From sequence record NC_048046.1: DNA of 64,000 nt. One strand, written 5' to 3'. The translations under genes and the position numbers were made by a program. The notes under the pieces are model-generated. The model was not told the origin of the DNA, did no database searches, and saw only the letters and a list, made by a program, of their open reading frames with translations. Shown piece after piece: positions 2,526 through 61,378 of this stretch. Numbering within the stretch: position 1 is the stretch's first letter; each line of letters begins with the position of its first letter.

Positions 2526-3082
2526 GCCTCGTCAGCATCTACGAACGCGCGCTTTTCCTGATCCGGGAAGAGCCCGACAACACGCCCATGAACGCTTTCG
2601 TCGTGGGCCTGAACTATGGCTCTCAGGACGTTCCGACCCGCTACGAAGCCGTTCGGCGCCTGGGCAAGAAGATCGGTCTGGACGTGCCGGACGACGTCAC
2701 ACTGTTGGACGACAAGCAAGTCGACGTCCTGCTGGTCAAGATCGACGCGTGGCGCAAGACCCGCACCATCACGCAGTTCTCCGGCCGCCTGGAGAACGCG
2801 TTCGGTGAGGCCCGCCGCGAGCGCAACGCGGCCATCCTGGAGGAGGTGATCAAGCGTTTCGAGCGCTTCCCGCCGGCCGCCATCGTCCCACTGCGCGACG
2901 TCTTCGATACCATCTGCCACGTGGCGAGCAAGGTCGAGCCAACCGACAGCGTTTGGGCTGCCGCCGATGCCTACCACGCCTTCGAGCTTGTTAACGGGAA
3001 GTCGTCACCCAACTGCCTGCCGGCCGCGTCGGCAGTCGTTCGGCTCAAGGCGGCGCTCCAGGCGAATAGGCCGCCGGCATGA
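2522..3082 (+). CDS. hypothetical protein
   Basis: ORF track, ATGA overlap chain. Confidence 0.7.
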   Translation: MSLVSIYERALFLIREEPDNTPMNAFVVGLNYGSQDVPTRYEAVRRLGKKIGLDVPDDVTLLDDKQVDVLLVKIDAWRKTRTITQFSGRLENAFGEARRERNAAILEEVIKRFERFPPAAIVPLRDVFDTICHVASKVEPTDSVWAAADAYHAFELVNGKSSPNCLPAASAVVRLKAALQANRPPA

Positions 3083-3366
3083 GCGTCTTCCTGGAGAACG
3101 GCAAGGCGACGCGCAACTCGATCCTGATCCACGCGGCGAAGGTCGCGCTGGGCTGGTACCCTAATCCGGCCACGTTCGATCAGGTAATCGAGGTTGCTGT
3201 GGAACAGCAGGAACGCTCGGTGGGCTTCGACGAGGTCTACGCGGCGGAGCGCGCTGCGCGTGCGGCCTTTCGCAAGCACTACAGTTACCTTGATCTGTCG
3301 ACGCCAGTCGAACCCGCCAAGATGGCGCATCGACTTCTGTTCATCGCGATGCAAGTGCCGGCGTGA
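3079..3366 (+). CDS. hypothetical protein
   Basis: ORF track, ATGA overlap chain. Confidence 0.65.
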   Translation: MSVFLENGKATRNSILIHAAKVALGWYPNPATFDQVIEVAVEQQERSVGFDEVYAAERAARAAFRKHYSYLDLSTPVEPAKMAHRLLFIAMQVPA

Positions 3367-6945: not shown

Positions 6946-6979
6946 GCCGTCGAAAAAAGTTCAAGAATCTTGTCATCAA

Positions 6980-7012
6980 GAGTTGACGGACGGCAGGGAG
7001 GCCAATAGATAG
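6980..7012 (+). promoter_or_regulatory. sigma70-type promoter upstream of the interrupted tRNA-like pair
   Basis: TTGACG 6983-6988 and TAGAT about 17 nt downstream; member of the GAGTTGACRGAC family. Confidence 0.5.
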
Positions 7013-7050
7013 ACATCAAGCGCGGCGGAAATGCGGCGCGGATGAGAGAT

Positions 7051-7326
7051 CGGCGGGTAGCTTTAGTGGTAGAGCACCAGGGCCGCACAATCATCGGGTG
7101 AGACCAAGTTAGGCGACGCGGATGGCACATTCTTCAGTGCCGGAAACCAAGCCAAGCGAGGTTGGAAGTCCCTTTAGCGAGGGATGGACTTGGACGAAGA
7201 TGAATACTGGCGAGGCGGTACGGGATAGGCCATCCTGGAAACCAGACTAGGAAAGTCGACGAAAGATCATTCGATGCGCGGATGAAGACCTGGGTGTCGG
7301 GGGTTCGAATCCTTCCCCGCTGACCA
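7051..7326 (+). ncRNA. tRNA-like gene 1 with a 200-nt structured insert in the anticodon loop (spliced form would read anticodon GAA)
   Basis: Acceptor CGGCGGG/CCCGCTG-A-CCA; D-arm GCTT..GAGC; anticodon stem CCAGG 7077-7081 / CCTGG 7289-7293; loop ATGAAGA 7282-7288; T-arm GGGGG-TTCGAAT-CCTTC; insert 7082-7281. Confidence 0.8.
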
Positions 7327-7338
7327 TCTCTCGAATAA

Positions 7339-7588
7339 CGGTGTGTAGCTCAGGTGGTAGAGCGCCAGGGCCGGGATTACTATGGTACTGCCGAAGCGAA
7401 GCAGACGCCGGGGTCGCTACTCGGAAGATGCGGGTCTGGAGCAACGGTAAAAGTGCGGATTACGCGGCTCAGCGCAGCAGCTAACTTCGGTTGCTAGCGG
7501 GTGCTGAAGAAACGTACCGAGTGGCCGGGGACCATAGCCTGGATGAAGACCTGGAGGTCGGGCGTTCGACTCGCGCCCACACCGACCA
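7339..7588 (+). ncRNA. tRNA-like gene 2 with a 173-nt structured insert in the anticodon loop (spliced form would read anticodon GAA)
   Basis: Acceptor CGGTGTG/CACACCG-A-CCA; D-arm GCTC-AGGTGGTA-GAGC; CCAGG 7365-7369 / CCTGG 7550-7554; ATGAAGA 7543-7549; T-loop TTCGACT; insert 7370-7542. Confidence 0.8.
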
Positions 7589-7616
7589 TTCCCTTTCGCA
7601 GCGCAGGAGGCCTCTC

Positions 7617-8162
7617 ATGACGATCACGAGCGAGGCCCCGCTGCTGGCCAACGAAACTCCCTCTTTCCTCGTCGGGCACCTGCTCGATCTCGCTGACGTG
7701 CGTCCCGGACATACGGTCCTGGAGCCTAGCGCCGGCGACGGCCGCCTCGCGTTCGAGGCCGTGGCCCGAGGCGCCGATGTCACCGCGATCGAACTGAACC
7801 AGCGCTGCTGCGAGAGCATCGCCAAGCAGCGCGACATGTACGGTCTTCCGAAGTCCGTTCTGGCCGTGCGCCGCTCCGACTTCTTGATGACGCCGGTGAC
7901 GACGCTTTATGACCGCGTGGTTATGAACCCGCCGCGCGCGAATGTCCCGCACGTGACCCACGCCTACAGCTTCCTGAAGCCGGGCGGCCGACTGGTCGCG
8001 CTGATCCATCGCGAGCATGCCGAGGCGATCATCGTCCATGTTGGCGTCGTGGGTGACGCGGAATACTCGCTCACGACCCTGCCGGCTGACATGTTCCAAT
8101 TTGACGGCAAGCCGATCGAAGCTGCGTTCATCACGCTGTGGAAGCCACATGAAGCTGCCTAG
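7617..8162 (+). CDS. SAM-dependent amino-methyltransferase (NPP-motif class)
   Basis: AGGAGG RBS; motif I VLEPSAGDG and motif IV VVMNPP; substrate unknown. Confidence 0.75.
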   Translation: MTITSEAPLLANETPSFLVGHLLDLADVRPGHTVLEPSAGDGRLAFEAVARGADVTAIELNQRCCESIAKQRDMYGLPKSVLAVRRSDFLMTPVTTLYDRVVMNPPRANVPHVTHAYSFLKPGGRLVALIHREHAEAIIVHVGVVGDAEYSLTTLPADMFQFDGKPIEAAFITLWKPHEAA

Positions 8163-8637
8163 CCTGATCTGGCGCCGGCCCGGTGGCCTGGAGGAGTGCC
8201 CGTACTTCCGCTTGACCAAGCTGGACTTCGGACTGTTCTCGTTACGGGTCCACGAGTGGGCTGGCGATGACGATCATCGTGCTTACCACGATCATCCGAA
8301 CTGGTTCATCACCTTCGTCCTGAAGGGCGGCTACACCGACGAGAGCCCGGACATGCGGCCCGAGGTGATCGAGCGCCTGGGCGAGCCCGGCAAGGTCTAT
8401 GACGTCCTGCGGGCGGGCTCGATCCGGTACCGTCGCGCCGATTTCGCCCACAAGGTCATCAACGTCAAGCCGGGCACGGTCACGCTGCTGATCGCCGGCC
8501 GCCCATCGCGCCGCTGGGGCTTTTGGATCAAAGGCAAGCTGATCAAACGCGATCGCTACTTCATCGAGCAGGGCCACCACGGCTGCACGCCCGACGCGGC
8601 TCCGATCCGCCGGCGACCTGACGGGTCGCGCCTGTGA
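8149..8637 (+). CDS. cupin-like protein
   Basis: HDHP..F.T.VLKGGY and later FAHKV pattern typical of small phage cupins. Confidence 0.55.
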   Translation: MKLPSLIWRRPGGLEECPYFRLTKLDFGLFSLRVHEWAGDDDHRAYHDHPNWFITFVLKGGYTDESPDMRPEVIERLGEPGKVYDVLRAGSIRYRRADFAHKVINVKPGTVTLLIAGRPSRRWGFWIKGKLIKRDRYFIEQGHHGCTPDAAPIRRRPDGSRL

Positions 8638-14120: not shown

Positions 14121-14196
14121 TGGCGATCCCTACTGGACTCGAACCAGTACCCGCCCTTTAGAAGAGGGCTGCCCTCTCCGGTTGGACCAAGGGACC
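14121..14196 (-). tRNA. tRNA-Arg(UCU)
   Basis: Reverse complement folds fully: acceptor GGTCCCT/AGGGATC-G-CCA, anticodon arm GCCCT-CTTCTAA-AGGGC, T-arm ACTGG-TTCGAGT-CCAGT; 76 nt. Confidence 0.9.
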
Positions 14197-45594: not shown

Positions 45595-46145
45595 GGGACC
45601 CTTCGAAATTAGGGTAGAAATAGGCTAAAAAATAACTAAGAATTTCAGAGCCCGGCCCCGACCCCGAGCGCTCATCTACATTTGGTGCCAATTTCGACAT
45701 CACCCCATAGATGTGGGGCAAATCTTGGGCTCTAGACACCTGGGATTCTGCGGGGCGCGTTAACCATGTTTGTTTACGTTAATGCACCCTCGGCCGGTAA
45801 CCCTAATTCGTAGCCTTAAAATCCCCCGACTTTACCTGGAGTATGGCCCAGGCACTACCCGGTCAGACCGCTCCGGTATGGCCGCGAGATCGGCGCGTCG
45901 ACAGCCTCAGCGGCCTGTCTGCGCCCTGACAGCCGCCGGCGCCTGCCGACAAACCTACGGACCTCAGCCACCAAACCTACGGAGTCCGGCGATCGAGGTC
46001 CGCAGGTTGGGGGACCCTTAGAAATTGACCGGGGGACCCTTCAAAATTCACCCACCAGGGACCCTGGAAATTTCACCGGGGGACCCTTCGAAATTCTGCC
46101 TCCGGGGACCCTAGGAAATTCTGGAGCCAGGGACCCTGGAAAATT
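45595..46145 (+). repeat. GGGACCCT-N2/3-AAATT direct repeats x7
   Basis: Starts 45595, 46011, 46033, 46058, 46080, 46105, 46130. Confidence 0.9.
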
Positions 46146-46323
46146 CACCCAGAATTTGGCCGGATCACCGGCCTATTTAAGCCCAACCCTCAGATCGGCA
46201 TAAATATCGGCGATTTTACCCCATTTTCGGCCCAAAAACCCTTAAAAATCAGCTTTTTAGTCCCATTTCAGCATCGGCAACGCCCGCTCCGCGCCCTGAC
46301 TGACCGCAGTCATCCTTCAGCGC

Positions 46324-46546
46324 AAATGTGACTCACCAACCTGTCGTCACAATTCCTCCCACGTTTTCAACACGTTACAGAGTCACGTCTCAAATCCGGC
46401 CACGCCCAGCCCGATCCGGTCATCCGGCCAAACCTTAATCCGGCCATATCCGGACATCGCCTCGTCCCAGAAACTTCAATGAAATCAATAAACCCTCCAC
46501 ACCAAACGTGACTATCCGGACATATCCGGCCACGCAAACGTGACTC
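46324..46546. repeat. AAAYGTGACTC (GANTC-containing) cluster 1 with interspersed ATCCGG x7
   Basis: 46324-46334, 46380-46390 (reverse), 46504-46514 (variant), 46536-46546. Confidence 0.75.
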
Positions 46547-46583
46547 TCGACATATTGCTGCACCGCAGCATAGCCCCAGCCCG

Positions 46584-46632
46584 TACAACCCATTTCGGTT
46601 GTATTTCCGCTTTACAACCAATAACGGTTGTA
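46584..46632. promoter_or_regulatory. tandem palindromic operators TACAACC-N6-GGTTGTA x2
   Basis: 46584-46603 and 46613-46632. Confidence 0.7.
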
Positions 46633-47049
46633 TCTGCCCAGGCACATCCCCTCATCCCTGTCAACCCCACCTACCTGCGACCACCTCGCAGTCCTGATTT
46701 GGCAGAAACGAGACTGTGTCGCCGGCGCCGCGCCCCTGCGTTATCGTGCCGCGCTTGCCAGAGCGCCAGGATCGTGCCCTACTGTCGATCGGGAGCCGGC
46801 CTCCCTGGCTCAAGTGCTTCGGCGTAGCGGGAAGATCGAACCCAGCCCCGTGACTCGCTGCAATGCCGCCTTGAGCGACCTCGATCGTCTCTCCCAAGCG
46901 ATATCGAGGTCAGGCCGGCTCCTATCCCACCTCCAGGTCACCCAAAACAGGGCTAGTGGCGCGGATTCACCCGTTTTTGGGCTAGTCTGGGCTCAAAACA
47001 GCCTAAATCGGGCGAAAAACTCGACAAAACGCCATTTTATTCGCAAAAC

Positions 47050-47169
47050 TTGACGCGATTCCATTAATTTGACGCGACGTCATTCCATTTCGCCAACTTG
47101 ACACGACGCCATTTCATTTCGCCGACTCGACATGACGCCATTTCATTCTCTTGACGCGACGCCATCCCG
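47050..47169 (+). repeat. five iteron-like repeats TTGACGCGACGCCATT...
   Basis: Starts 47050, 47069, 47098, 47127, 47151. Confidence 0.8.
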
Positions 47170-47202
47170 TTCTGCCCGGCGCTCGACCACCGCCCAGGTC
47201 GG

Positions 47203-47430
47203 TTAAGGTAAACGTCAGGCCCGTTAACCATGATCGTTAGGGTTAACGCCCAGGTAGGGTTACGAATTAAGGTAAACGCGGAGTTAGGGTTAACGTTCGT
47301 TAAGGTTAACACCACGTCGCTCGGCTAACAGTAGTAGTGTTAACGTGCAACGCACTGTTAGGGTTACGAATTAAGGTTAACGCGCCCGGCGGTCATACCG
47401 GGTAATACTTAACGGGCGTTAGGGTTAACG
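47203..47430. repeat. dense cluster of TTAA(C) half-sites
   Basis: About a dozen TTAA in 230 bp, as GTTAGGGTTAAC and TTAAGGTTAAC units; TTAACCAT at 47224. Confidence 0.75.
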
Positions 47431-47434
47431 CCCT

Positions 47435-47506
47435 AAGAGCGCGCAGCCTCGCCGTTGCGCCCCTACGGTTCGAAGAGCCCGGCCCTGCCGGGTCCTGCCC
47501 GGCTAC
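47435..47506 (-). ncRNA. putative structured small RNA, copy 1
   Basis: Invariant 26-nt core; downstream of the minus-oriented box 47530-47544. Confidence 0.6.
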
Positions 47507-47573
47507 CTCTACACCCTAGCGGCTATTTCTTAACAAAACGTAAACGCCCGACACTTTCGCGCCGGGCGTCTCG

Positions 47574-48487
47574 TTATGCGTCGTCCGCTTGCGCGGCGGC
47601 GCCGTAGTCGTGTTGATCCCATAGGACGCCCAGCGTTTGGTCAGGGCTGAAATGGGGGCAAACCGTTTCGATTGTGTCGTAAGTCTCCCGGAAGGCGAGC
47701 GCGTCGTCATCCTGGAGCCAAACCGACGTTTTGGCGGCCTTGTTGCGCAGCGTGTACGCCGCGCCGTTGCCGTAGCTGTCAAGGGCGAAGCGTTCGCCCT
47801 CCGATATGCGAATCGGGCCTGAGTACATGGTCAGCACCCCGTCGGGTCGGCCTTGGCGTAGCGCCAGCGCTCGCCGTCATGCCAAAGCCCGGTTGAGTGA
47901 ACCGTTCCGTACTCGCGAATCTCGCGACGGGCGGTTTCGGGGTCGATTCGGTCGTATCGCCACCCCTTGCCGGCCGAGTCTTCGGAGGCTTGCGCCTCGC
48001 GTAGCTCTTTGGCCGTCATTTCGAAGATGTGGCGGGAGTAGCCGACGATTTCACCGGCCTCTTTCATGGGAATTCGGCGCATGACGTACATGTCGCGTTC
48101 TCCGAAGGCGCCGGGCGTTTCCGCCCGGCGCTAGGTTACCAGAGCGCCCAGAGAATGAGCGCGGCGAGTAGCAGGGGCGTAAGCTTGATCAAGCTACAGC
48201 CCCAAGGCATGGGGGACGCCCCAAACGGCCGCCGCGTTGCGCGGGCGGGCGTCAAGGGCCAATCGCCACCGGTAGAGGTATTCTCGCGCCGCCGCTTGTT
48301 CGGGCGTCCGGCCGTGTCCGATACGCTCCGCCATGCGGGTTGCGACGTCGGAGCCGGGAACCTTGCGCACCGGGTCGGAGCACATGTCCGCGAAGAGCGC
48401 GCACGCCTCTTTGATTGCCGGCGCGTTGTCCGCGAAGGACTGGCGCAAGAAATCGACGAGAGGGACGCGTTTAGGCGTTTCGTTCAT
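47574..48487 (-). CDS. three small cassette genes (47574-47837, 47831-48091, 48194-48487)
   Basis: ORF track; fed by the minus-oriented box 48555; bidirectional hairpin near 47545-47570. Confidence 0.6.
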
Positions 48488-48658
48488 AGGGCCTCACGAT
48501 GTCAAAGAGCGCGGCGGGGTTGTCCGCCGACCCCTGCAATCTCGCACCTATTTCTTAACAAGACGTTAACGGCCGAATCTTTTTTGCGTTTACGTTTTGT
48601 TAAGGAATGGGCGTTAGGTTGCTCTCGACGGCGCAACCCGCGCCCCTGGAGCAAGGCC

Positions 48659-49066
48659 ATGTTTTCGAACCTCCCGCCGCACCTCTTCGTTTCGTCCGCT
48701 GGCGGCGACCTCTTCGACACCCGCGACCCGGATTGGAATTTCAAGCCGCCGCTTCGCCGCGCCTATTCGACGGCCGCCGACCCTATCGAGACGCTTTCTC
48801 AGGTCAAGGCGGCCTTGCGGGCGGGTCCTTACGCTTGGCCGGGCGGGTATCCCCTGTATTTCGTCACCCGCGACGGCGCCGCCCTGAGTTTCGACGCCGT
48901 GCGCTCGCAATTCGCCAGCGTGGCGGATGACTTCATGTCGGACTCCTCGACGGGCTGGCGCGTCTGCCGTGTTGAAATCAACTATGAGGATTCCGACCTG
49001 CGATGCGACCACACGGGGAAAGCTATCCCCGCCGCGCACGGTGACGACGAAGACGAACCGGCTTAA
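48659..49066 (+). CDS. cassette gene, AWPGGYP-motif protein
   Basis: Leader family A plus CCTGGAG RBS; YAWPGGYPLYFVT.DG..L....VR..F ... C..T motif. Confidence 0.75.
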   Translation: MFSNLPPHLFVSSAGGDLFDTRDPDWNFKPPLRRAYSTAADPIETLSQVKAALRAGPYAWPGGYPLYFVTRDGAALSFDAVRSQFASVADDFMSDSSTGWRVCRVEINYEDSDLRCDHTGKAIPAAHGDDEDEPA

Positions 49067-49132
49067 CCTTTTGTTAAGAAATAGCCGGTAGGGTGAAACC
49101 TGCCGGCGCATCCCGCGCCCTGGAGCCTGCTT

Positions 49133-49426
49133 ATGTCGCACGTCTATGACATCGAATATACCGACACGTTCGCCGGGGAGGCGAATTACTCATGGGTTCG
49201 CCGGGCGACCGTGACCATGCCAGAGCTAACCCATTACGGGTATGACGGCGGTTCGAACTACTCCAAGGCGAACAAGGTTTTTAACCGCGAACTCATGAAG
49301 CGCGCCAAGGCCGCCATGGGCCTGACGGGCGTCAAGGGCGTCTCGACCACGCACGGGGACACCCTGGAGTTTCGCCCCTACGGCTCCGCGACGGTCCTTT
49401 TCGCCAACTATCGCGAAATAGACTGA
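49133..49426 (+). CDS. cassette gene, TDTFxGEANYSWV-motif protein
   Basis: Leader family A plus RBS; motif recognised by eye. Confidence 0.75.
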   Translation: MSHVYDIEYTDTFAGEANYSWVRRATVTMPELTHYGYDGGSNYSKANKVFNRELMKRAKAAMGLTGVKGVSTTHGDTLEFRPYGSATVLFANYREID

Positions 49427-49491
49427 CCACGACGCCCGGCGCCTGGACGGCCGCCGGGCGTTCGCTTGCCCAGCCCGTTAACCATGTTTTT

Positions 49492-49562
49492 GAAAAGCGC
49501 CCAGCCTCGCCGTAGCGCCCCTACGGTTCGAAGAGCCCGGCCCCGCCGGTCCCGCCGGCTAC
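49492..49562 (-). ncRNA. putative structured small RNA, copy 2
   Basis: 59 nt identical to copy 4; downstream of the minus box 49586. Confidence 0.65.
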
Positions 49563-49689
49563 AGGTCCAATCTAGCGCTCATTCCTTAACAAACCGTAAA
49601 CGCGAGAATCTTTTTCGTGTTTACCTTTTGTTAAGAAATAGGGTCTAGTGTTCTCGTGTCGGGCGGATCGGCCGCCCTGGAGAACCTGA

Positions 49690-51630
49690 ATGCAAAACAT
49701 GCCCAAGCATGACCGCGAAGTCATCTGCGCCATCGTTACGCACGCCCTGGCGCTCGGCTATGAAGTCGCCTGCGCTGATACCGAACTCGACTGGACGACT
49801 GACCCGGCCGCGATCTTCGCCGACCTCGGCGAGTGCGACGAAGAGCGAATCAGCTTCCGCAAGCCCGGCGACCCGACGCGCAAGCATTGGGTTTATCTGG
49901 TCTACGGGAACGGGGAAGGCGAAACCGTCTGCGACTACCGCGCCGACGCTGAAACCCGCGAAATCCTCGCCGTCGCCGACGCCCTGGCCAGCGTGCAAGA
50001 CATGGAAGCGCTCGCGCTCCAGCACCGCAAGCCCTTCACGGAAGACGTGGGCGGCGACCTGCAACTGTCCATCGCCTGGACCGGGACTGGTTTCATGTAC
50101 GGGCTCGCCCGTGGCCCGGACGCGCCTTCGCTGGACCTTCGGCGCCTGCAAGCGGTGTCTTGGCTCGCCACGCGCCCCGCCGACGACTACCGGAGCGCCG
50201 CCACCGTTGACCAAGTCGTCGCGGTCATGGCGGAAGTCGACAAGGTCCCGCACCTGATCGAACGCGCCGCCTAAATCGAACGCCCCGGAATCTTTTTCCG
50301 GGGCGTTTACCTCTTGTTAAGAAATAGCCGTTAGGTTGCTCTTGTGGCGGGACGGTCCCGCCCTGGAGAAGACCCGATGAACGAAGCCCAAACCAACGCC
50401 GCCGCCGCGATCAAGACCACGGGTGAAACGATCCTGGCGAAGATCGAAGCGGCCCGCGCGGAAGTCGCGGCGAACCCGCACCTCGCCGGCCAATTCTACC
50501 TTGTCGCCGACACGGGCGGCGGTCTGGTCGTGAACTCGGACGGCGCGCACGGCTACCGCCTGAGCGGCATGTTTAGCCCCCTGACTCTGGCCTTCGACGC
50601 CACCGCCAAGGAAGAGGCCTATAAATTCGCCGGTCACTGGAATCGCCGCATAACGCCGGCTCAACGGGCCTCGCGCTGCACCGTCACCGTGACGACCCGT
50701 GAGGAGGCCTGGAGCGCCCTCGAAAAGTCCTGGCGCGAAACCTTCGCCATGATCGAAGCCGCCAAGAAAGACTAAGGCGAGCGCCCCGGCCGAAAAGCCG
50801 GGGCGTTTACCTCTTGTTAAGAAATACCCTCTACAGTCCAACTTGTCGGCGCATCCCGCGCCCTGGAGCAAGTCCCATGCGTAAGCCTCGCCTGTATTTC
50901 GAATATTACGGCGTCACCGTCTGGCGCAACACGTCGCCCGGCTTCGCCCTGCGCTGGAGTGGCGGCGGGTACGCGGCCGACACCCAAGAGGGAATCCGCC
51001 GCCTGATCCGTGAGGGTCGATGAGCAACGCCGCCCGCGCCGAAAAATGGATCGGCCGCGTTGAGCAAGGAGTCGGCCGCGCCCTCGAAAGAGCGGCGCGG
51101 TCCCGGCCCTTCGCTATCGAGGCGGAGGCCGCCCCGTTCCTGGCGACCTTCAAGCGTCAGGCCGCCGGACATGCCGCGCGCGCCCAGACCCTGGCCAGCC
51201 AAGGCGACCGCGTCGGCGCCTTGGTCGAGGCGGGACACGCGCAACGGTGCGCCGCGAACCACGCGAGAATTTTGGAGGCCGTCGACTCCGTCTTAACCTC
51301 TTGTTAAGAAATAGGGGCTAGGTTGCTCTTGTGGCGGGACGGTCCCGCCCTGGAGAACCTGAGATGAGCACCCTTCCCGTTCGGACCCTGGCGCAAATCG
51401 GTCACCTGACTTGGGTGGCCACGCGCAAAGGCGCCGGCTTCGATGCGGCGTTCGCCGATAGTGACGACGCTATCCGCCACGCCATGAACACGGGCGGCAA
51501 CGTCGGCCACACCCTCCTAGGCTGGATTGACATGTTCAGCCCTTCGGCGACGTTCGAAGAGAACCAACGGCAGGTCGCGGCCTTCCTCGAACGCGGCGAC
51601 GAATTCGACCGCGTCATGGGCCAAGGCTAA
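49690..51630 (+). CDS. cassette genes (49690-50274, 50377-50775, 50877-51023, 51020-51307, 51364-51630)
   Basis: Each, except 51020, follows a box, leader hairpin and CCTGGAG RBS; terminators at about 50281, 50782, 51637. Confidence 0.75.
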
Positions 51631-51698
51631 GCCAAGCGCCCCGGCAGAAAAGCCGGGGCGTTTACCTTTTGTTAAGAAATACCCTCTAAGGTGATCAC

Positions 51699-51768
51699 GT
51701 ACCCGGCAGGACCGGGCGGGCCGGGCTCTTCGAACCGTAGGGGCACAACGGCGGGGCTGCGCGTTTTT
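51699..51768 (+). ncRNA. putative structured small RNA, copy 3
   Basis: Occupies an entire cassette slot between box 51661 and box 51794, has no RBS or ORF and ends in a T-run. Confidence 0.7.
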
Positions 51769-51862
51769 CAGCGCCTCGAAAAAGTTCACCGCGTTAACGT
51801 CTTGTTAAGAAATAGCGCCTAGGGTGGCTGTGTGGCGGGACGGTCCCGCCGGAGAAAACGAC

Positions 51863-53379
51863 ATGACCACGCAAGCCGCCCTCGCCGCCCGCCTGGACCG
51901 CGCCGCCCGGATCATCCGGGGCGAAGTCGCCGCCTCCAAGCGGAAAGAACGCAAGGCCCGCCGCGCGTTTTCCCGCGCCCTCGCCGGCATGGACATTCCG
52001 ACCTATGTCGCTTGGCTGAACGATCCGGCCGACTCCTTCGCCCTTACCGACGACGTCGCCCATTGGGCGCAAATCGGAATCACGAACGCCGCGCAACTCG
52101 GCGACTACCTGAACGGGTGCGTTCGTCGGGAAATGGAAAAGGACGCTCGCAACGGTTATTGCGATGACGCCTTTGACGACTACGCCGAACGCGGCGGCTA
52201 CGGCGGCGGCGATGACGGGGAGGGCTACACCTTCGACCGCGACCGCGCCGAAGGGATCGCCGCCGACAAGGCCAAGCGCGACGCCATGCACGAAGACATG
52301 CCGTTTTAACGGTTTGTTAAGAAATAGCGTCTAGAACGAAACCACGGGCGGCGGATCGGCCGCCGCCCGGACCTTCGGAGCCCCGAAAATGTTCCTCTGG
52401 ATTTGGACCGTCGCCACCGACGAACTGACCCCCGCCTATAAGAACCCGCCGGCCGTCGCGCCGGAAGGTTGCCTTTTCCTCATGGCGGCAAACCAACGCC
52501 AAGCGGAACGCGCCCGCGACCTCGCCAAGGCCGCCGGCTAAACCCCTCAATCTGGAGCGCAAGCCCATGACGCAACGCTACCGCCTCGCCGATCAAATCA
52601 AGGTCGCGAACGAGGTTTCGAATCTACTCTATTCGGCCTCCGACGTCGTCGCCGTCGCTGCGCAGTACGAAACGACGCCCGCCGGTCAAGCCAAGCTCGC
52701 CAAGCTGCGAAGCGACCTCATCGGCATGAGCGCCGGCGCCCTGACGCACAAGCCGCCGGCCGCCGTGCTCGAAACCCTCGTTTGGGTTGTCGAGTTGGCG
52801 CAAGATCGCGCTACCGGCGCGGACTTCAACACGCCGCAAGAGGCCCTGGACGAACACGACGCCTTAGCCTTCGTTTGCGACTGGCTGAAGGCTCAAGGTC
52901 AGGACGTGTCGCCGATCATCGGCGCGCAACCGTCTTCCGAAGCGCTCGCTAAGTTGGTAGCGGCTCGCGACGCCGCACAAGCTGAACTCGACGCGCTGGA
53001 GGTTCCGGCCCTGCCTGAAGCGGTTGACGTCGTCGCCGACGTTCTCCGCTACAAGGACGCCCAAGGCGACGCGGACGACGTCCTTTCCGCCCTGGCGCGC
53101 GCCGGCTTCAAGGTCGTTCGGGAAGGGGAGGCCTAGCCTATGGCGCAAACCTTCCCCCACGTGCTGGCGTCGCAGCACTTCCCCGGCCGGGGCGCTACGG
53201 CGCCCGGATCGGTCGTCCTTCGCGACCTAGGCCCGACCGCGCCGCATCGCTACGTCACCCACTTCCGCAACGAAGAGGACCCGGCGAAGCCGTATCACGT
53301 CATGGGCCACTATTTCGCCGAAGACGAGGAAGCGGACGCACAAGCCGATTTCCGTAAACGCTGCGCTCGCGGCTACTGA
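51863..53379 (+). CDS. cassette genes (51863-52309, 52567-53136, 53140-53379)
   Basis: Boxes 51794 and 52306, leader hairpins, RBS. Confidence 0.7.
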
Positions 53380-53407
53380 TCAACCCTCAGGACAAGGAGT
53401 CCAGACC

Positions 53408-53599
53408 ATGACCGACAAGACCCCCGCCAAGCCGAAGAAAGCGCCCGCCAAGGCCAAGGCCGCCCCGGCTCCGAAGGAAGCCGCCGCCGCGCCCAAGACG
53501 CCCCGCAAGGCCAAGGCCGCCCCGGCTCCGGCCGCTCCGCGTCCGAAGGTGCGCGGCCTGAAAGCCGCCCTTTTCGGGGGCGCGTTCAACCGCCTGTAA
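53408..53599 (+). CDS. 63-aa Lys/Ala/Pro-rich histone-H1-like protein
   Basis: AAGGAG RBS; KAKAAPAP repeated twice, PAKPKK. Confidence 0.7.
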   Translation: MTDKTPAKPKKAPAKAKAAPAPKEAAAAPKTPRKAKAAPAPAAPRPKVRGLKAALFGGAFNRL

Positions 53600-53692
53600 A
53601 ACTTCCCGGCGTTTACCTCTTGTTAAGAAATAGGAGGTAGAACATAAACACGGGCGGCGGATCGGCCGCCGCCCGAACTCCCTGGAGGCCCC

Positions 53693-54376
53693 ATGGCCCG
53701 TAAGCTGACTCTCTCGCTGCTCGCGAACCCCGATTTGAGCATGGCGAACGTCACGACCACGTCGCAGCGTATCGAGGACTGGACCGACACCCTTTATCCC
53801 GAAGACGGGAGCGAAGGCGCTGAAATCGTCCTGCCGCCGGTCACGTTCGGCGCCGTGTATGAGCGCGCCGAAGACCTGCTGACCAAGTCGCAGCAACGCA
53901 CCGCCGAACGGTCCCCGAATCGCGAAGTCTCGCCCGACCTCGCCGAACGTTTCGAGGGGAGCGACGGCCACGACGAATGGCGGGCGTCGTTTGACCCCAT
54001 GATGAACTATGTTTGGCCGGTCGCGCTTCCCTACCGCGCCGAAGCCTCGCAAGTCGCCGCGCTGCTGCAAGAATTCTGCCCGGTCATGACTCTGGTCAAC
54101 TTCGGCGACGACTCGCCGTTCTGCTCCGAGTCCCACGCCTTCGCGCTCTCGGGCGGCGGAATGAACCTCGCCGACCAAATCGCGACGGCCTATCTCTGCG
54201 CCGGCGTCGTTCCGCCCTCGTCTCTGCTGGAATCGCTCCCCGGCGTGATCAGCGATTATCAACGCGACAAGGTCGCCCCGGTCCTGCGCAAGGCCTATCG
54301 GAAAGCCGCCGATTACCACGCGTACCGGGCTAAGGCGATCCGCCGGGAAGCCGGCCGCGTCTTCACCAAGTCCTAA
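53693..54376 (+). CDS. cassette gene, hypothetical (LSGGGM.LA..I..AY motif)
   Basis: Box 53612, leader family B, CTGGAGG RBS; terminator near 54385-54410. Confidence 0.75.
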   Translation: MARKLTLSLLANPDLSMANVTTTSQRIEDWTDTLYPEDGSEGAEIVLPPVTFGAVYERAEDLLTKSQQRTAERSPNREVSPDLAERFEGSDGHDEWRASFDPMMNYVWPVALPYRAEASQVAALLQEFCPVMTLVNFGDDSPFCSESHAFALSGGGMNLADQIATAYLCAGVVPPSSLLESLPGVISDYQRDKVAPVLRKAYRKAADYHAYRAKAIRREAGRVFTKS

Positions 54377-54439
54377 GCCTGGAGGCCCGGCGCACCCCGC
54401 CGGGCCTTTAGCGTGTCTGGCGCGTTAACCATGTTCTAG

Positions 54440-54509
54440 AATTGCGGGCAGGTTCGCCGTAGCGCCCCTACGGTTCGAAGAGCCCGGCCCCGCCGGTCCC
54501 GCCGGCTAC
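54440..54509 (-). ncRNA. putative structured small RNA, copy 4
   Basis: 59 nt identical to copy 2; downstream of the minus box 54534. Confidence 0.65.
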
Positions 54510-54635
54510 AGGACTCACCCTAGACCCTATTCCTTAACAAACCGTAAACGTGAAAAAGAATCTCGCGTTAACCTCTTGTTAAGAAATACCCCCTATGGTC
54601 CTCTCGACGGCGCACCCCGCGCCCTGGAGTCTGAC

Positions 54636-55241
54636 ATGACCCTTCCGACCCTTTACCTTCGCCGCGAACCGACGTCGCAAGGCGTCCCGAACGTCGATGA
54701 CTCGCCGGAGCGTTTCGACATCGTGGCCTATCGCGACAAGGCGATGACTGACGCCGCCGGCCGCTGGCCTTGGTTCTATCAGTCCAAGCCCCGCAAGGGC
54801 GCGAAAACCGTCATGCTCAATTGCATGCGTCACCGCGCCGCGTGGCGCCCCGATCATCACGGCGAAACCCCGTTCATGCTGGAAACGCGCCGCGCCATGA
54901 CGGCCGCGACGATGCAAATGGACGCCCTGATTTCCCGCCTGCACGCCGAAGGCCGTAAGCTGGCGCTCGCCGGGACCGTGGCCTATTCCAAGGCGCACCC
55001 GCGCCGAACGGTGACGTTCGTTAGCGCCATGGGCTCCAATTGCCTGCACGTCACGCCGGGCGGGACGTCCTATCGCGGCGAATACCAACTGACCACGGGC
55101 GACCATGGCGACTACCCGCCGCCGGCCTGGATGGAAGAGCTAGACCGCCTTTGCGACGACTACCGACTCGGGACGTTCCCGGATAACCTCAAGGTCGTGT
55201 GCAAGGGTGGAAAGATCATCGAGCAAGTTTCCAACTGGTAA
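54636..55241 (+). CDS. cassette gene, hypothetical
   Basis: Box 54568, leader family A, RBS. Confidence 0.7.
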   Translation: MTLPTLYLRREPTSQGVPNVDDSPERFDIVAYRDKAMTDAAGRWPWFYQSKPRKGAKTVMLNCMRHRAAWRPDHHGETPFMLETRRAMTAATMQMDALISRLHAEGRKLALAGTVAYSKAHPRRTVTFVSAMGSNCLHVTPGGTSYRGEYQLTTGDHGDYPPPAWMEELDRLCDDYRLGTFPDNLKVVCKGGKIIEQVSNW

Positions 55242-55307
55242 CCTTTTGTTAAGAAATAGCCGGTAGGTTCATCCCTGCCGGCGCATCCCGCGCCCCTGGA
55301 GTCGAAC

Positions 55308-55958
55308 ATGCCCCGCACCGTCACTAAGGAAGTTTTCCAGTACGACGAACTGACGCCGAAGGCCCAAGAAAAGGCCCGCGACTGGTTCCGCGACATGCTG
55401 GACCGCACCGCCGATAACGAATTCGCCGAACCCGTCATGGAAGAGGCCGAACGCGTCGCCGGCATGCTCGGAATCACCTTCAAGCCGACGCGCGGCGGTG
55501 ATCCGGTATCGTGGTCGGGCTTCTACAGCCAAGGCGACGGCGCCAGCTTCGAGGGCCGTTACGCGGCCCCGGAAAAGCCGGCTTTCGAGACGATCAAGGC
55601 CGAATTCCCTACGGAATTGAAGTTGCAAGCCATAGCGGCCGAACTGGACGCCTTCCAAGATCGCCACGGCCGCCGACTGGTCGCGGACATCACCCGCAAC
55701 GGCCGGAGCAACTACGTTCACGCCTATACCGTCGATATCGACGTTTGCGAGCAAGACGAGGCCGCCGACGACGGACTCGTTAACGTTTCGCCGACGACCG
55801 AAAAGGCCATCGCCGACGAACTGCGCAATTTCATGGGCTGGATTTGGGATCAACTCCGCGAAGCCTATGAAGGCGACCGCGAGGACGAAACCGTCGCCGA
55901 CAATATCCGCGCCAACGAATACGAATTTGAGGCGGACGGAACCCGGACCCGCGACTAA
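55308..55958 (+). CDS. cassette gene, WSGFxSQGDGASF-family protein (often auto-annotated as antitoxin; function unproven)
   Basis: VFQYDEL...AQEKARDW, WSGFYSQGDGASFEG, I.ANEYEF..DG. Confidence 0.7.
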   Translation: MPRTVTKEVFQYDELTPKAQEKARDWFRDMLDRTADNEFAEPVMEEAERVAGMLGITFKPTRGGDPVSWSGFYSQGDGASFEGRYAAPEKPAFETIKAEFPTELKLQAIAAELDAFQDRHGRRLVADITRNGRSNYVHAYTVDIDVCEQDEAADDGLVNVSPTTEKAIADELRNFMGWIWDQLREAYEGDREDETVADNIRANEYEFEADGTRTRD

Positions 55959-56008
55959 CGCAACCCGGCCGGCGCTTCGGCGCCGGCCTAGCCTGGAAAG
56001 GCCCCGCA

Positions 56009-58595
56009 ATGAACATGGCTCGCAAAGAACACGCCGGAAGCTACCAAATCGGGATTTGGGGCGTTGAGCGCATCCGACGCGGCGTCTGGGAAGCCCGCGC
56101 CAACGGGCCGGGTACGCTTGGCGACGGCTCGCCGCATACGTATCCGACGCTCGACGCGGCGCACCTCGCCTTGACCGGCGAGCCCCGGCGAGAAATTCGC
56201 GGCTCTTAACCTGTTGTTAAGAAATAGCCGCTAACCTCTAATCATCGAACAACGGGAGACACCCCCCATGATGACCAACCCTCACGCCCTGGCGATCCTC
56301 GCCGCCGCAAACAAGATTCTTCCCCTGACGCACCTGCACCCGTGCGACCAACGCGCGCCGGCCGTCGATATCATCGGCGACCTGTTCAAGATCGCCGACG
56401 ACATCGACGCCGCCGCCCCGGCTTCGGCCGTGACCCTGCCGGCCGGTAACGAGACGCTGGCGAAGCTGGGCGCCGCCGTCGCCCTGGCGCGCCTGGAACT
56501 CGAAAGCGCCTATCAGCGGACCGAAAGCATTAGCGAGCGCCACCGCCTCGCGCCGCTCATCGCCACCATGTCGGACGCCCTCAAGGCGTACCGCGCCGAC
56601 CCGGCGACGCCCAAGGCTCCGGCCGCGCCCCTGCCGCACGCCTTCGCCACCATTCCGGACGGTTCGGCCCTGCAACGCGCCACCGCCGCCGGTATCGCGA
56701 TCTTTCAGGCCGAAGGCTCGACGTTCTACACGCCCGGCCCGTCCGCCAACTTCACCCGCGACGACTGGCGCGGCCCGTACTACGGCGCGGCCGAAGCCGC
56801 CCGCGCCGCCCTGGCCGAACGCAACGGGAAGGCGGCCTAAGCCATGCTGAATCCGATCCTTCGCGAACGGCGCGAGCCGGTCGATATCGTCCTAGACGCC
56901 CTCAAGGGCCGTATGGGCGAAGCCGACGCTTCGGAGGCCTGCGACTCCGTGTTCCTGGCCCTGCAAAACGAGGGTTACGCCGTCGCCCCCTTCACGATTG
57001 AAGGCCGCCGCCTCACGCAAACGGATACGGGCGTCAAGCTGGGCGACGCGCTCCGGACGCTCTTCGAAGCGGTCCCGAACTACGCCGTTCGGTCGCAACG
57101 TCTCGCCGACGCCGTGAGCGTCGCTAGCGGGTACGTCTATCAACCCCGGTATCGCTTCCTCGCCGACGACGGCACGGGCGCGGCGATCCTGACCAACTGC
57201 GACGACGGCCGGAGCGTTTATTTCCAGCCCGGCCCGGACGCCGACGAGGCCCGCGCCGAATTCGAGCGTTCGCAGTACACCGACGAGACGGCCGAAGGCT
57301 TCGGCGTCGCCGGCCTCTGGCGCGCCAAGGCCGCCGCCTATTTCAATGACGATCCGGAAGGGCTCTAGCCGATGAGCTACGACACGAAGACTCTCGCCGC
57401 GCAAACGATCATCGACGCGCACACCGCCGGCCGTGGCCTGGAGGAAGGCCAAAGTCGGGCAACCGACCTCTACCACGTTCTCGACTCGCTGCTGACGTGG
57501 AGCGACTTCCACGGCGTGGACTTTGACGCCACGCTTTCGGAGCTACGCGCCGACCTCGCCGAAGAGCCGCCTTGCGCCGGCAATGTCGGCCGGGTCGTCA
57601 TCACGCTGGAAACCGGCGAAGGCGCCCGCGAGGAATTCGTGTCGCGTCACTACACGATTGCCGAAGCCGTCGCCGCCCTGGATGGCCCCGGTATCGACGC
57701 CAAGGCCCGGCATGAGGGCCGTTACACAATCGCCGCGCCGCACGGGCTGGGCTCGGACCTTGAAGCCGTCCCCCTGGCGCGCAAGCTGGGCTATCAGGGC
57801 AAGGATTGCCCCGCCGCCGCCTTCGCCTTCCTCTCTACCCGGATTCCCTGATCATGGCCAAGCGCAAGCCCTACACCCCGAACCCGTTCGCCCGCTACAG
57901 CGTCGGCGGCCTCTCCGCCGAAGCCAAGGCCGCCCGCCGGCCTTCCCTGGCCTGCCTTCGCGCCATCGTCCGGGAAGCCGCCGCGCTAAAGGCCGAAGCC
58001 GTGGCGCGCCTCGCTGATCAACGGTGGATGCGCGGCGCCTCGCTCATGGCGCAAAGCTGGACCCGTGACAACGCGGCGATGAGCGTTCACGCCCTAGCCC
58101 GGAAGAACCTCGAATATCTCCGGATGCGAGCGCACCTCACGGTTTCGCCAGAGCGGGCCGGCTCCTACGCGCCCGCCGGCTGGCCTATCGACCGCCCGGC
58201 CCTGGAAAAGTGGCAAGCCCTCAACCCGCCGCCCCCGGCCCGTGACTATGACTCGCTCATCGGCCGCGCCGCCCGCGCCTCCGGCTGGGCTTAAGGAAAG
58301 GATTCCCATGTCGGACCTGATCAAGCTCAACCCCGAACCCGCCAACATGACCGCCGTCAAGCTGGGCGCCGTCATCCTGTATTTCAGCTATCAGACCCTT
58401 GTCGGGTTCCGTTGCCCGCATCTGGGCACGGTGTCCAATCCGGACGGCAAGGGCTACGGCCGAACGACCGCCGGCCACATGACGAAATTCGGCCTCGCCA
58501 GCGCTCGGACCACGGCGACGGAATCGGATTTCCAGACGCTCGCGCTTCGGGCCGTTCAAGGCCACGTCCGCGACATCGGCGAATTGCTGATCTAG
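56009..58595 (+). CDS. cassette genes (56009-56209, 56268-56840, 56844-57368, 57372-57851, 57854-58294, 58308-58595)
   Basis: ORF track, close packing, box 56206. Confidence 0.65.
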
Positions 58596-58609
58596 TCGCG
58601 CCCGTTCAA

Positions 58610-58710
58610 GAGTCACGTTTCAGGCCTAACCTGACTCCAACAGAGTCACATTTTCCCGAAACCGTGACTCCGCCTCGATTTCCCGTCACGTTCTGGTCTA
58701 AACGTGACTC
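58610..58710. repeat. AAAYGTGACTC (GANTC) cluster 2
   Basis: Five GANTC at 58610, 58633, 58643, 58666, 58706; the outer pair forms an exact 11-bp inverted repeat. Confidence 0.85.
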
Positions 58711-58743
58711 GTCCTAGTTCCTCAGTAAAAACAAGGAGTTATC

Positions 58744-58818
58744 TTGCGCTTCATCGAACACATGCTTGAAGGTTCCGGCGTCCTTTTCGCAATCGTCATC
58801 CTTTTCCTGCTGCATTAA
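58744..58818 (+). CDS. 24-aa hydrophobic peptide MRFIEHMLEGSGVLFAIVILFLLH
   Basis: AAGGAG 5 nt before TTG; stop lies inside box 58815; not in the ORF track. Confidence 0.5.
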   Translation: MRFIEHMLEGSGVLFAIVILFLLH

Positions 58819-58901
58819 CCTCTTGTTAAGAAATAGCGGGTAGAGGTAGAGGGGTCAGGCGCACACCGCGCCGGCCCCTCTTTCTGTTGGAGCGCAGACC
58901 A

Positions 58902-59393
58902 ATGCCCGACTACAAGACGAACGACCCCAAGGGCTACATGGGCGACCCCCGCCGGGGCGCCGCCATGGGCCGTCCGACCTACGCGCCGGACGCCGCCGGC
59001 TGGACCGTGGAAGGCCTGAAGACGGCCGCCGCCCTCGAAGAGGACCGCGCCCGGATCGCCGAAGAGCAACGCGAGAACCGCCCCGGCGACGGCTATAAGC
59101 GCCAGTGCTGGGAAGCCGCCGCCGCGTCGTTCCGCAAGGAAGCCGAACGCCTCCGCTCGCTCATCCCGGCCGCCCGCGCCATGCTCGCCGCCTCGCCGAA
59201 GATCACCCTTCAACGCGTCCGCCTGGACTCGGGCGGCTACGACCGCAACGGGACCTATTTCGGGCATGACCTCCCCCTGTATTGGGCGGCGGACGAATCC
59301 GGCGACTATGACGCGACGTTCCGCGCCGCCGACCGCAACGCGGCGAAGGCCATCGTTCGCGAGACGTACCCCGCCGCCCGCTTCTACAACTAG
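58902..59393 (+). CDS. cassette gene, VRLxSGGYD..G.YFG..PLYWA-motif protein
   Basis: Box 58815, GGAG RBS; motif recognised by eye. Confidence 0.75.
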   Translation: MPDYKTNDPKGYMGDPRRGAAMGRPTYAPDAAGWTVEGLKTAAALEEDRARIAEEQRENRPGDGYKRQCWEAAAASFRKEAERLRSLIPAARAMLAASPKITLQRVRLDSGGYDRNGTYFGHDLPLYWAADESGDYDATFRAADRNAAKAIVRETYPAARFYN

Positions 59394-59470
59394 CCGGCGT
59401 TAAGGGGTTGTTAAGAAATAGCCGGTAGGGTCACACCTACCGGCGCACCCCGCGCCCTGGAGAAAATCGG

Positions 59471-60823: not shown

Positions 60824-60900
60824 CCTCTTGTTAAGAAATAGGCCCTATGGTCTATTTCGAGGGCGGCGGATCGGCCGCCGCCCGAACCGGAGTAGACGCG

Positions 60901-61332: not shown

Positions 61333-61378
61333 CCTCAACGGGCGGGCCTCGCGCCCGCCCAAGCCCTGGAGTCCTGCC

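Follow-up and report, generated by a model that had tools for sequence, protein, structure and literature searches.

The right end of the genome record of Caulobacter phage CcrPW (MH588545 / NC_048046, 308 kb; Colossusvirus, Dolichocephalovirinae) carries two tandem genes for phenylalanine transfer RNA (tRNA), tRNA-Phe(GAA), each of which is split in the anticodon arm by a large folded insert. Sequence comparison indicates that these are two real phage genes, that they belong to a conserved and so far unannotated cassette family, and that their inserts are folded RNAs under selection. This family may be a new kind of tRNA intron in bacterial viruses, and could prove a new class once its mechanism is known. 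We tentatively favour, at somewhat short of an even chance, the reading that the inserts are enzyme-spliced, non-group-I tRNA introns whose RNA has a second role of its own; the splicing, the cutting and joining enzymes and the role of the insert are all things that we infer from sequence. The whole stretch analysed, called the window below, comprises 64,000 nucleotides (nt), the last 64 kb of the CcrPW record, so that a window position equals the record position minus 244,141. Over the locus, identity is 100% with CcrPW and 91% with the related phage CcrColossus.

Two tRNA-Phe genes split at the same position

In its intron mode, ARAGORN (ARAGORN -i) makes two tRNA-Phe(GAA) calls. The first spans 7051-7326 and is interrupted by 200 nt (7082-7281); the second spans 7339-7588 and is interrupted by 173 nt (7370-7542). 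In each case, the break falls between positions 31 and 32. These calls agree with the original prediction of two tandem tRNA genes with an identical anticodon stem CCAGG/CCTGG and loop ATGAAGA, interrupted by inserts of these lengths at the same place in the anticodon arm. The joined exons give 76- and 77-nt cloverleaves with an encoded CCA, A73, the anticodon stem CCAGG/CCUGG and the loop AUGAAGA (U33, anticodon GAA, G37). Once the inserts are removed, both genes thus have everything expected of a tRNA-Phe, namely a 7-bp acceptor stem, D and T arms, a 5-bp anticodon stem, a 7-nt loop, U33, GAA, a purine at position 37 and A73. Because the junctions contain runs of G, the cut sites may lie up to 2 nt further 5', which would yield the same product.

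When the exons of gene 1 are joined, they give a gap-free alignment, junction included, with tRNA-Phe genes that are annotated in Vibrio, Klebsiella, Bacillus and Burkholderia phages and have no insert. The body of gene 2 is akin to the tRNA-Pro scaffold of phiCbK-like phages, yet it bears a Phe anticodon loop. The other tRNAs of CcrPW cover 17 amino acids, and Phe, Tyr and Thr are not among them. In nearly all family members, both window genes included, the first pair is C1-G72, where the usual tRNA-Phe has G1-C72, and the GC-rich members have G37 in place of the bacterial A37.

With the inserts in place, neither gene is matched by the uninterrupted Rfam tRNA model. A default ARAGORN search for tRNA and transfer-messenger RNA (tmRNA) genes, together with Rfam at gathering scores, returned from the window only tRNA-Arg(TCT), an ordinary gene (14121-14196, minus strand; 54 bits on the Rfam tRNA model), and no tmRNA. 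A tmRNA was rejected for the split genes on this combined search and on their full D arm and anticodon stem. The 670-bp interval between gp365 and gp366 is unannotated in the GenBank records of both CcrPW and CcrColossus, and the record of Brevundimonas phage Bajun likewise lacks annotation of its split tRNA genes. The tRNA sets reported for these phages are therefore incomplete, since standard annotation misses these genes, and full-text literature searches turned up no publication describing them. Detection by ARAGORN -i alone proves little, because the program makes false calls elsewhere in the CcrPW genome; it is the comparative evidence that carries the case.

The elements of the locus, in window coordinates, are as follows.

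6983..7011, plus strand: promoter-like element TTGACG-17 nt-TAGATA, about 40 nt upstream of gene 1; a possible promoter
7051..7081, plus strand: 5' exon of gene 1, positions 1-31 (acceptor 5' strand with C1, D arm, CCAGG); the acceptor stem covaries
7082..7281, plus strand: insert 1 (family 1, 200 nt); unpaired G, closing helix CCGC/GCGG (7083-7086 / 7278-7281), three-arm junction
7092-7101 / 7267-7276, plus strand: second helix of insert 1, CAUCGGGUGA/UCAUUCGAUG, from the consensus fold
7125..7140, plus strand: hairpin of insert 1; loop AUUCUUCA (7129-7136), complementary to UGAAGA (7283-7288)
7282..7326, plus strand: 3' exon of gene 1, positions 32-76 (AUGAAGA, CCUGG, variable loop, T arm, acceptor 3' strand, A73, CCA)
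7339..7369, plus strand: 5' exon of gene 2, positions 1-31
7370..7542, plus strand: insert 2 (family 2, 173 nt); unpaired G, helices CCGGG/CCUGG and CUAUGGU/ACCAUAG, 5' hairpin, long 3' arm
7477..7494, plus strand: hairpin of insert 2; loop UAACUUCG (CUUCG at 7485-7489), complementary to UGAAG; three compensatory stem pairs
7543..7588, plus strand: 3' exon of gene 2, from the loop AUGAAGA through CCA
7617..8162, plus strand: gp366, small S-adenosylmethionine-dependent amino-methyltransferase; no terminator lies between the tRNA genes and the protein genes
8149..8637, plus strand: gp367, cupin; best-conserved partner of the split genes (55-94% identity across loci)

A family of split tRNA-Phe genes in other phages

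Homologues of the split genes occur in CcrColossus, in phage Bajun and on seven metagenomic phage contigs, which amounts to eight syntenic loci beyond CcrColossus. These further homologues were reached through the flanking proteins, Bajun by way of gp366 and the contigs by way of gp366 and gp367 homologues in a large protein collection, and not through DNA or exact-pattern searches. CcrColossus has both genes. Eight pairs of its insert 2 are changed on both sides, with the closing helix CUAUGGU/ACCAUAG becoming CUGUGAU/AUCACAG, and one acceptor-stem pair of its gene 1 is changed by compensation. In Bajun, a 700-bp unannotated gap contains the same tandem pair 5' of a 40%-identical homologue of gp366. 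Tandem pairs are also present on contigs L057, L058 and L059, and single split tRNA-Phe genes on L060, L064, L066/L067 and L070, several of them in AT-rich phages. The split genes always lie just upstream of the cupin gene, usually with the small methyltransferase gene in between. The element TTGAC(A/G)-17-TAnAnA precedes the homologous genes in L057, L058, L059, Bajun, L060, L064 and L066; in the window, a strict sigma-70 scan did not call the copy at 6983..7011. In the homologous loci, as in the window, the tRNA genes are followed by the protein genes with no intervening terminator.

Over the whole family, the inserts are 145-201 nt long, and joining the exons invariably restores a stem of 5 bp and a loop of 7 nt, which in 13 of the 16 copies reads N-U-G-A-A-R-N (seven nt, U33, GAA, purine 37). 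The anticodon stem covaries by lineage (CCAGG/CCUGG, CCUGG/CCAGG, ACAGG/CCUGU, CAAGG/CCUUG and AUGAG/CUCAU). The closing helix of the insert is present in all lineages while its sequence changes:

CcrPW gene 1, CCGC/GCGG; CcrPW gene 2, CCGGG/CCUGG
L059 gene 2, CCGGC/GCUGG; Bajun gene 2, CCGUGC/GCAUGG
L064, CUGG/CCAG; L066, CCGU/ACGG; L060, UGAC/GUCA

The closing helices had been named in the original prediction, which counted a lack of their conservation in homologues, together with a lack of transcript, against itself; they are kept, with covariation.

It is hardly credible at all that these are dead tRNA genes broken by inserted DNA. Their absence from the annotation of the CcrPW, CcrColossus and Bajun records would agree with such a reading. 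Against it stand the conservation of the genes, the compensatory changes in both exons and inserts, the conserved promoter-like element and a synteny that is kept even though the flanking proteins of these phages are no more than 40-55% identical.

Inserts at other tRNA positions are found in relatives. Contig L073 (2577-2756) encodes a tRNA-Phe with a 105-nt insert at 37/38, which scores 41 bits on the Rfam tRNA model. On L071 (about 2955-3125), a tRNA-like gene with the anticodon CAC has, read by eye, an apparent insert of about 95 nt in the D loop. Other cupin-linked tRNA-like genes are uninterrupted and have abnormal anticodon loops containing AAC (L072, 2131-2301; L074, 513-585), and L068 (2319-2790) holds two irregular tandem tRNA-like genes. 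Many of these cupin-linked variants (L073, L071, L072, L074, L068) have C1-G72 and a 3' end reading ...CUGACC. No split tRNA was found near the methyltransferase homologues of Rhizobium and Pararheinheimera phages or of contig L061.

The inserts as folded RNAs under selection

A consensus structure of tRNA plus insert was derived for family 1 from CcrPW, CcrColossus, L057, L058, L059 and Bajun. It comprises 83 pairs, with 91.5% of cells paired over the six sequences vs 83.4% in shuffles. A count of compensatory changes on these homologues gave 26 compensatory pairs for family 1 vs 9.2 +/- 2.1 in shuffles (0/500 as high); controls in which pairing partners were slid by 1-3 columns gave 2-9. Outward from the anticodon stem, the fold begins with an unpaired purine and a 4-bp closing helix that is stacked beside this stem. 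Beyond an asymmetric internal loop comes a 10-bp helix, in which two G.U pairs are invariant, and then a three-arm junction. Its invariant unpaired nucleotides include UGAnUA, GGACUUG and CCAAGC. Family 2, which differs from family 1 in topology, shows 10 compensatory pairs in four sequences and eight in the comparison of CcrPW with CcrColossus, and the AT-rich pair L066/L070 has seven over the whole gene, exons included.

Identity to CcrPW varies between the parts of the locus:

Insert 1: CcrColossus 97%, L057 86%, L058 87%, L059 72%, Bajun 59%
Methyltransferase gene: CcrColossus 90%, L057 86%, L058 68%, L059 59%, Bajun 63%
Insert 2: CcrColossus 80%, L057 79%, L058 79%, L059 55%, Bajun 53%
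Gene 2 exons: CcrColossus 99%, L057 97%, L058 99%, L059 82%, Bajun 68%

By these comparisons, the constrained part is the tRNA in gene 2 and the insert in gene 1. Exons that are 97-99% identical around an insert of about 79% that changes by compensation are what one would expect if a functional tRNA contained an intron.

The interiors of the two inserts had appeared to share no obvious sequence, and this impression was borne out. The family-1 covariance model finds family 2 only weakly (15-23 bits), in part through the common exon flanks, and with filters off it does not match the AT-rich inserts. No core common to family 1, family 2 and the AT-rich inserts is thus detectable in the sequences compared. 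Since the junction architecture is nevertheless the same, recognition of a local structure by a protein fits better than one shared catalytic RNA.

Comparison with known intron and ribozyme classes

To our knowledge, the tRNA introns of Bacteria and phages described so far are self-splicing, mostly of group I and rarely of group II. Group I introns have a U.G pair in P1 and a terminal omega-G; group II introns have domains V and VI, GUGYG and AY ends, and usually exceed 400 nt. Rfam searches at E<=10 over 701 nt of the locus (6950-7650) found no group I, group II, self-cleaving ribozyme or large non-coding RNA family, and searches at E<=0.5 over nine homologous loci found none of these either. 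The covariance models of the hammerhead, hepatitis delta virus (HDV)-like, twister, pistol, hatchet and hairpin ribozymes gave no match at the same two thresholds. Besides the YrlA match treated below, the only match at E<=10 in the locus, to a C/D-box RNA, was put down to chance, and neither an HDV-like P1 nor RNase III-type overhangs fitted the sequence when checked by hand.

Degenerate or highly divergent group I introns are a very improbable explanation. Their appeal lies in a size near that of the smallest group I introns, in the location in the anticodon arm of a bacterial-type tRNA and in the G that ends most copies. However, RF00028 matches neither the locus (E<=10) nor the nine other loci, and the 5' exon never ends in the required U: the absence of a group I core and the final G of the 5' exon, both part of the original prediction, extend to the family, in which the exon ends in G or A in 16/16 copies (A in Bajun gene 1) and still does so when the junction is slid by 1-2 nt. 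A terminal G is present in 14/16 inserts, Bajun gene 1 and L060 ending in A. The arrangement is also the opposite of a P1/P10 guide with a P3-P7 core, as, in the fold supported by covariation, both ends of the insert are paired together in a 14-bp closing stem that leads to three arms. A group II intron was rejected likewise, in the absence of an Rfam match and with inserts of 145-201 nt that start (G/A)CCG and end GG.

A new self-splicing or self-cleaving RNA, which would either cut both junctions for joining by RtcB or cleave and ligate by itself, is quite unlikely, although several observations speak for it. The folds of family 1 are strongly conserved and contain invariant unpaired nucleotides, both junctions lie at the base of one helix beside single unpaired purines, the phage encodes RtcB, and the conserved hairpin loop described below could dock on the anticodon bulge, as in the kissing-loop design of the Varkud satellite (VS) ribozyme. 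Hairpin and VS ribozymes can both cleave and ligate. Against a ribozyme, families 1 and 2 and the AT-rich inserts have no sequence or structural core in common, no ribozyme model matches, the inserts occur at three different tRNA positions, and the docking pairing shows no covariation and is not present in L064 and L066.

YrlA (RF02553) was also considered and rejected. The threshold is 69 bits, but the score is 24.1 bits in the window and 34.7 bits in L059, where the outer stem is marked as not pairing. The match, which extends from gene 1 (T arm) into gene 2 (D arm), reflects tRNA likeness only; changes in CcrColossus break the swapped acceptor pairing that a YrlA reading implies.

Possible splicing by enzymes or a permanent chimera

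In the enzyme-spliced reading that we favour, the full cloverleaf would form in the precursor, with the closing helix of the insert prolonging the anticodon stem, one purine left unpaired on the 5' strand and the seven nt of the anticodon loop forming a bulge on the 3' strand. A protein endonuclease would cut at the two helix/bulge junctions while the tRNA body keeps the halves together, and a phage ligase would seal them: RtcB for a 2',3'-cyclic phosphate and a 5'-OH, or an Rnl-type ligase for a 3'-OH and a 5'-phosphate. The product would be a tRNA-Phe that the other tRNAs of the phage do not supply. Purifying selection acts on the insert RNA in its own right, most strongly in gene 1, and this RNA probably has a second role. 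For example, a UUC-containing hairpin loop might hold or shield the anticodon loop, or present it to the methyltransferase and the cupin. That the exact tRNA is rebuilt in 13/16 copies despite inserts of 145-201 nt counted for a spliced tRNA-Phe, and the inserts at other tRNA positions in relatives (37/38 in L073; D loop, by eye, in L071) counted for splicing by enzymes, as in Archaea. The covarying anticodon stem, the gap-free alignment with uninterrupted genes, the lack of Phe among the other tRNAs and the conservation pattern of gene 2 spoke for this reading as well, as did the lack of a match to any ribozyme or intron family and the RtcB and Rnl-type ligases that the phage encodes.

The main alternative, which we consider somewhat unlikely, is an unspliced, permanent chimera in which the anticodon stem of the tRNA body serves as the base of a functional folded domain. 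An unrecognised intron class and a tRNA scaffold with a cargo RNA were the two readings of the original prediction, which is partly supported. The body would provide RNase P and 3'-end processing, CCA, stability and perhaps recognition by phenylalanyl-tRNA synthetase, the cupin or the methyltransferase. Such an RNA would be nature's counterpart of the tRNA scaffold used in the laboratory, and would correspond to the YrlA design circularly permuted. The CcrPW Ro60 orthologue and its array of tRNA-like Y RNAs indicate that tRNA mimics are part of the biology of this phage, and the cupin-linked tRNA-like genes of L072 and L074, with their abnormal anticodon loops, point the same way. What a permanent chimera makes hard to explain without decoding is that 13/16 copies keep a seven-nt loop, U33, GAA and purine 37 exactly at the stem/loop boundary. 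It would moreover leave the phage without a tRNA-Phe, and in gene 2 the exons are far more conserved than the insert.

Several findings weigh against the enzyme-spliced reading, and a number of them favour the chimera. U33 has been replaced by A33 three times independently, in gene 1 of L057 (528-803, loop AAGAAGA), in gene 1 of Bajun (L053 3380-3653, loop UAGAAGA), where the bulge is over-long at about 10 nt, and in the single gene of L070 (1757-2005, loop AAGAAAG). Gene A of L068 has no recognisable anticodon loop. Insert 1, at 86-97%, is more conserved than its own exons and the methyltransferase gene, which points to a function of the unspliced RNA or of the insert itself. Together, the A33 copies, gene A of L068 and the conservation of insert 1 suggest that the gene-1 type of RNA, at least, is selected for something besides decoding. 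In all three A33 copies, the rest of the tRNA and the insert are intact.

Further points against splicing by enzymes concern the machinery. In a reading of the sequence, the bulge-helix-bulge cannot form, as ACCA, the bases 5' of the 5' site, is unable to pair with GCGC, the four bases preceding the 3' bulge, in any of the three junction registers, and the two cut sites face each other at the base of one helix. No tRNA_int_endo or other splicing endonuclease was found by Pfam among the approximately 20 proteins scanned near the cassettes; the phage proteome as a whole comprises 516 proteins. RtcB is also encoded by phiCbK-like phages, in which no split tRNA-Phe was found, their genomes not having been scanned in intron mode; its presence there rules out RtcB as a partner specific to the split genes.

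A possible loop-anticodon interaction

A hairpin of each insert exposes a loop complementary to the anticodon loop. In six homologues, the hairpin of insert 1 has a covarying stem and an unchanging CUUCA loop. A CUUC(A/G) loop on a covarying stem, which includes the Phe codon UUC, is found in families 1 and 2 and in Bajun gene 2. This loop may pair with the anticodon loop in cis, as a hypothesis only. Since the loop is invariant in family 1, it offers no covariation with which to test loop-loop pairing. Depending on the sequence, 8-50% of shuffles contain a loop-anticodon run of 5-6 nt by chance, and in none of the sequences does the run exceed chance; L064 and L066 have no such run.

A more specific version of the intron reading makes this pairing its centre: a phage tRNA intron class not known before, excised by proteins or by itself and joined by RtcB or Rnl, in which the UUC loop pairs with GAA in cis. 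In this form the reading is unlikely. If true, the cis pairing would keep host anticodon nucleases away from the loop or offer the loop to the methyltransferase and cupin oxygenase, and a bacterial virus would combine intron-dependent tRNA modification with tRNA splicing in the archaeal or eukaryotic style.

Each insert also contains an internal near-copy of the anticodon loop (UGAAGA or AUGAA), at 7196-7206 (GAAGAUGAAUA) and 7503-7510 (CUGAAGAA). GAAGAUGAAU is common to L064 and insert 1, and the near-copy is not conserved in Bajun gene 1. These near-copies might allow alternative pairings with the CUUC loop.

Relation to known systems

Splicing by a protein endonuclease and RtcB is regarded as archaeal and eukaryal. 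Its motif consists of two 3-nt bulges that contain the splice sites and lie 4 bp apart, and in Archaea enzyme-spliced tRNA introns occur at varied, non-canonical positions. Like the introns removed by EndA/Sen with RtcB or Trl1, the phage inserts lie in the anticodon arm, leave the mature tRNA fold intact, vary in sequence and length within exact exon boundaries and occur at other positions in relatives, and CcrPW encodes RtcB. They differ in having a phage carrier and a bacterial host, in their position at 31/32 rather than 37/38 and in that no bulge-helix-bulge is possible. Furthermore, the scanned cassette neighbours include no EndA-like gene, and the large inserts are conserved as folded RNAs.

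With the bacterial group I tRNA introns (cyanobacterial tRNA-Leu(UAA), Azoarcus tRNA-Ile(CAU), alpha-proteobacterial tRNA-Arg(CCU)), the inserts share the form of a structured RNA of about 200 nt without an open reading frame in the anticodon region. Unlike them, they match no model, follow a 5' exon ending in G or A instead of U, lie at the stem/loop boundary rather than within the loop and have their ends in a long closing stem.

YrlA and the engineered tRNA scaffold also combine a tRNA-like module with a long structured domain that extends from the anticodon stem, and CcrPW itself has Ro60 and a YrlA-like array. The phage RNA, in contrast, ends in an acceptor stem with CCA, YrlA being the permuted form, and it has a complete anticodon loop and no Ro-binding stem.

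A final comparison is with introns that do more than get spliced out. The intron of Haloferax tRNA-Trp directs 2'-O-methylation in the anticodon arm to which it belongs; this intron, the yeast intron-dependent modifications and the tRNA intronic circular RNAs of metazoans resemble the phage inserts, which are conserved beyond the needs of excision. The insert may pair with the anticodon loop, and enzymes of modification type adjoin the phage genes. Unlike the Haloferax intron, the phage inserts have no box C/D motifs, their pairing with the anticodon is hypothetical and their neighbours are an amino-methyltransferase and a cupin.

The family would show one of three things: splicing by enzymes in bacterial viruses, a new ribozyme, or natural tRNA scaffolds for RNAs. 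For the RtcB and Rnl ligases of phages, it also provides a possible substrate outside of repair, and it ties one particular tRNA to two proteins, a small methyltransferase and a cupin that is highly conserved but uncharacterised.

Neighbouring genes and RNA enzymes of the phage

The product of gp366 has about 180 residues, a Rossmann fold and the motifs VLEPSAGxG and NPPx. Pfam assigns it to Cons_hypoth95/MTS, with a weak TRM5-TYW2 match, and PHROG to DNA-methyltransferase domains; its nearest relatives are, among solved structures, KsgA/Dim1, RsmC/RsmD-like proteins and M.TaqI, together with the methyltransferase domains of large phage proteins. From these relationships, its substrate could be RNA or DNA.

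The cupin gp367 has about 160 residues with invariant His, Asp and Cys, and is more conserved than the methyltransferase. Its 89 homologues are nearly all metagenomic, several of them on contigs >200 kb. It belongs to phrog_4786 ('cysteine dioxygenase'). The AlphaFold model (predicted local distance difference test score, 95.8) gives ergothioneine and other thiol dioxygenases and other metal cupins as top Foldseek matches, at a template modelling score of about 0.5, so that this fold match is generic. As an ordinary metal-cupin fold, which is not that of a nuclease, it was rejected as a hidden splicing endonuclease. A TnsA-like nuclease near the split genes of L066 and L070 was discarded as well, having no counterpart by the CcrPW cassette.

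The cassette of split tRNA-Phe, NPPx methyltransferase and cupin is also present in L053 (Bajun), L057-L060, L064, L066 and L070, and in loci without the methyltransferase (L068, L073, L074) the cupin adjoins tRNA-like genes. A cupin profile search of IMG/VR returned CcrPW and CcrColossus only, because the peptide patterns were too narrow. In bacterial genomes, the profile found distant chromosomal cupins (<=37% identity) without split tRNAs, plus the phage-like fragment L074.

CcrPW gp363 is RtcB (PF01139, E = 2.5e-124) and gp411 an Rnl-type RNA_ligase (PF09414). Elsewhere, the phage encodes a CCA-adding enzyme, a Thg1-like enzyme and the Ro60 orthologue; in L059, a Thg1-like gene lies directly upstream of the cassette.

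Nucleotide searches and other features of the genome

Searches at the DNA level stayed close to the source. Against 50,697 phage records, blastn with the locus and with each insert matched CcrPW and CcrColossus only, and the Bajun locus matched only itself. In IMG/VR, the exon/insert junction pattern gave 30 matches, of which 28 were chance matches in coding DNA and two were the CcrPW and CcrColossus records. A scan with the 3'-exon pattern again returned these two phages only. The two junctions joined by a gap gave 12 matches in the metagenome collection, all by chance in coding DNA, and the family-1 motif pattern added nothing new from IMG/VR or from 185,579 genomes. The upstream neighbour gp365, used as bait, is confined to Colossusvirus.

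The GenBank record gives a terminal repeat, in which the final 18,404 bp of the genome are the same as the first 18,404 bp, so that the phage genome has two copies of window positions from about 45597 to 64000.

At least five YrlA-like units form an array, absent from the annotation, on the minus strand of the CcrPW record (116,200-117,300), adjoining gp440 (114,590-115,999), beside the Ro60 orthologue with its TROVE and Ro60 von Willebrand factor A domains. The units have the 5' motif GGUGGCGUAG...(A/U)CUUC and the 3' motif GUUCCCCCACC, and score 30-33 bits on the Rfam YrlA model against the threshold of 69. Two of them are miscalled by ARAGORN -i as intron-containing tRNA-Thr and tRNA-Ala.

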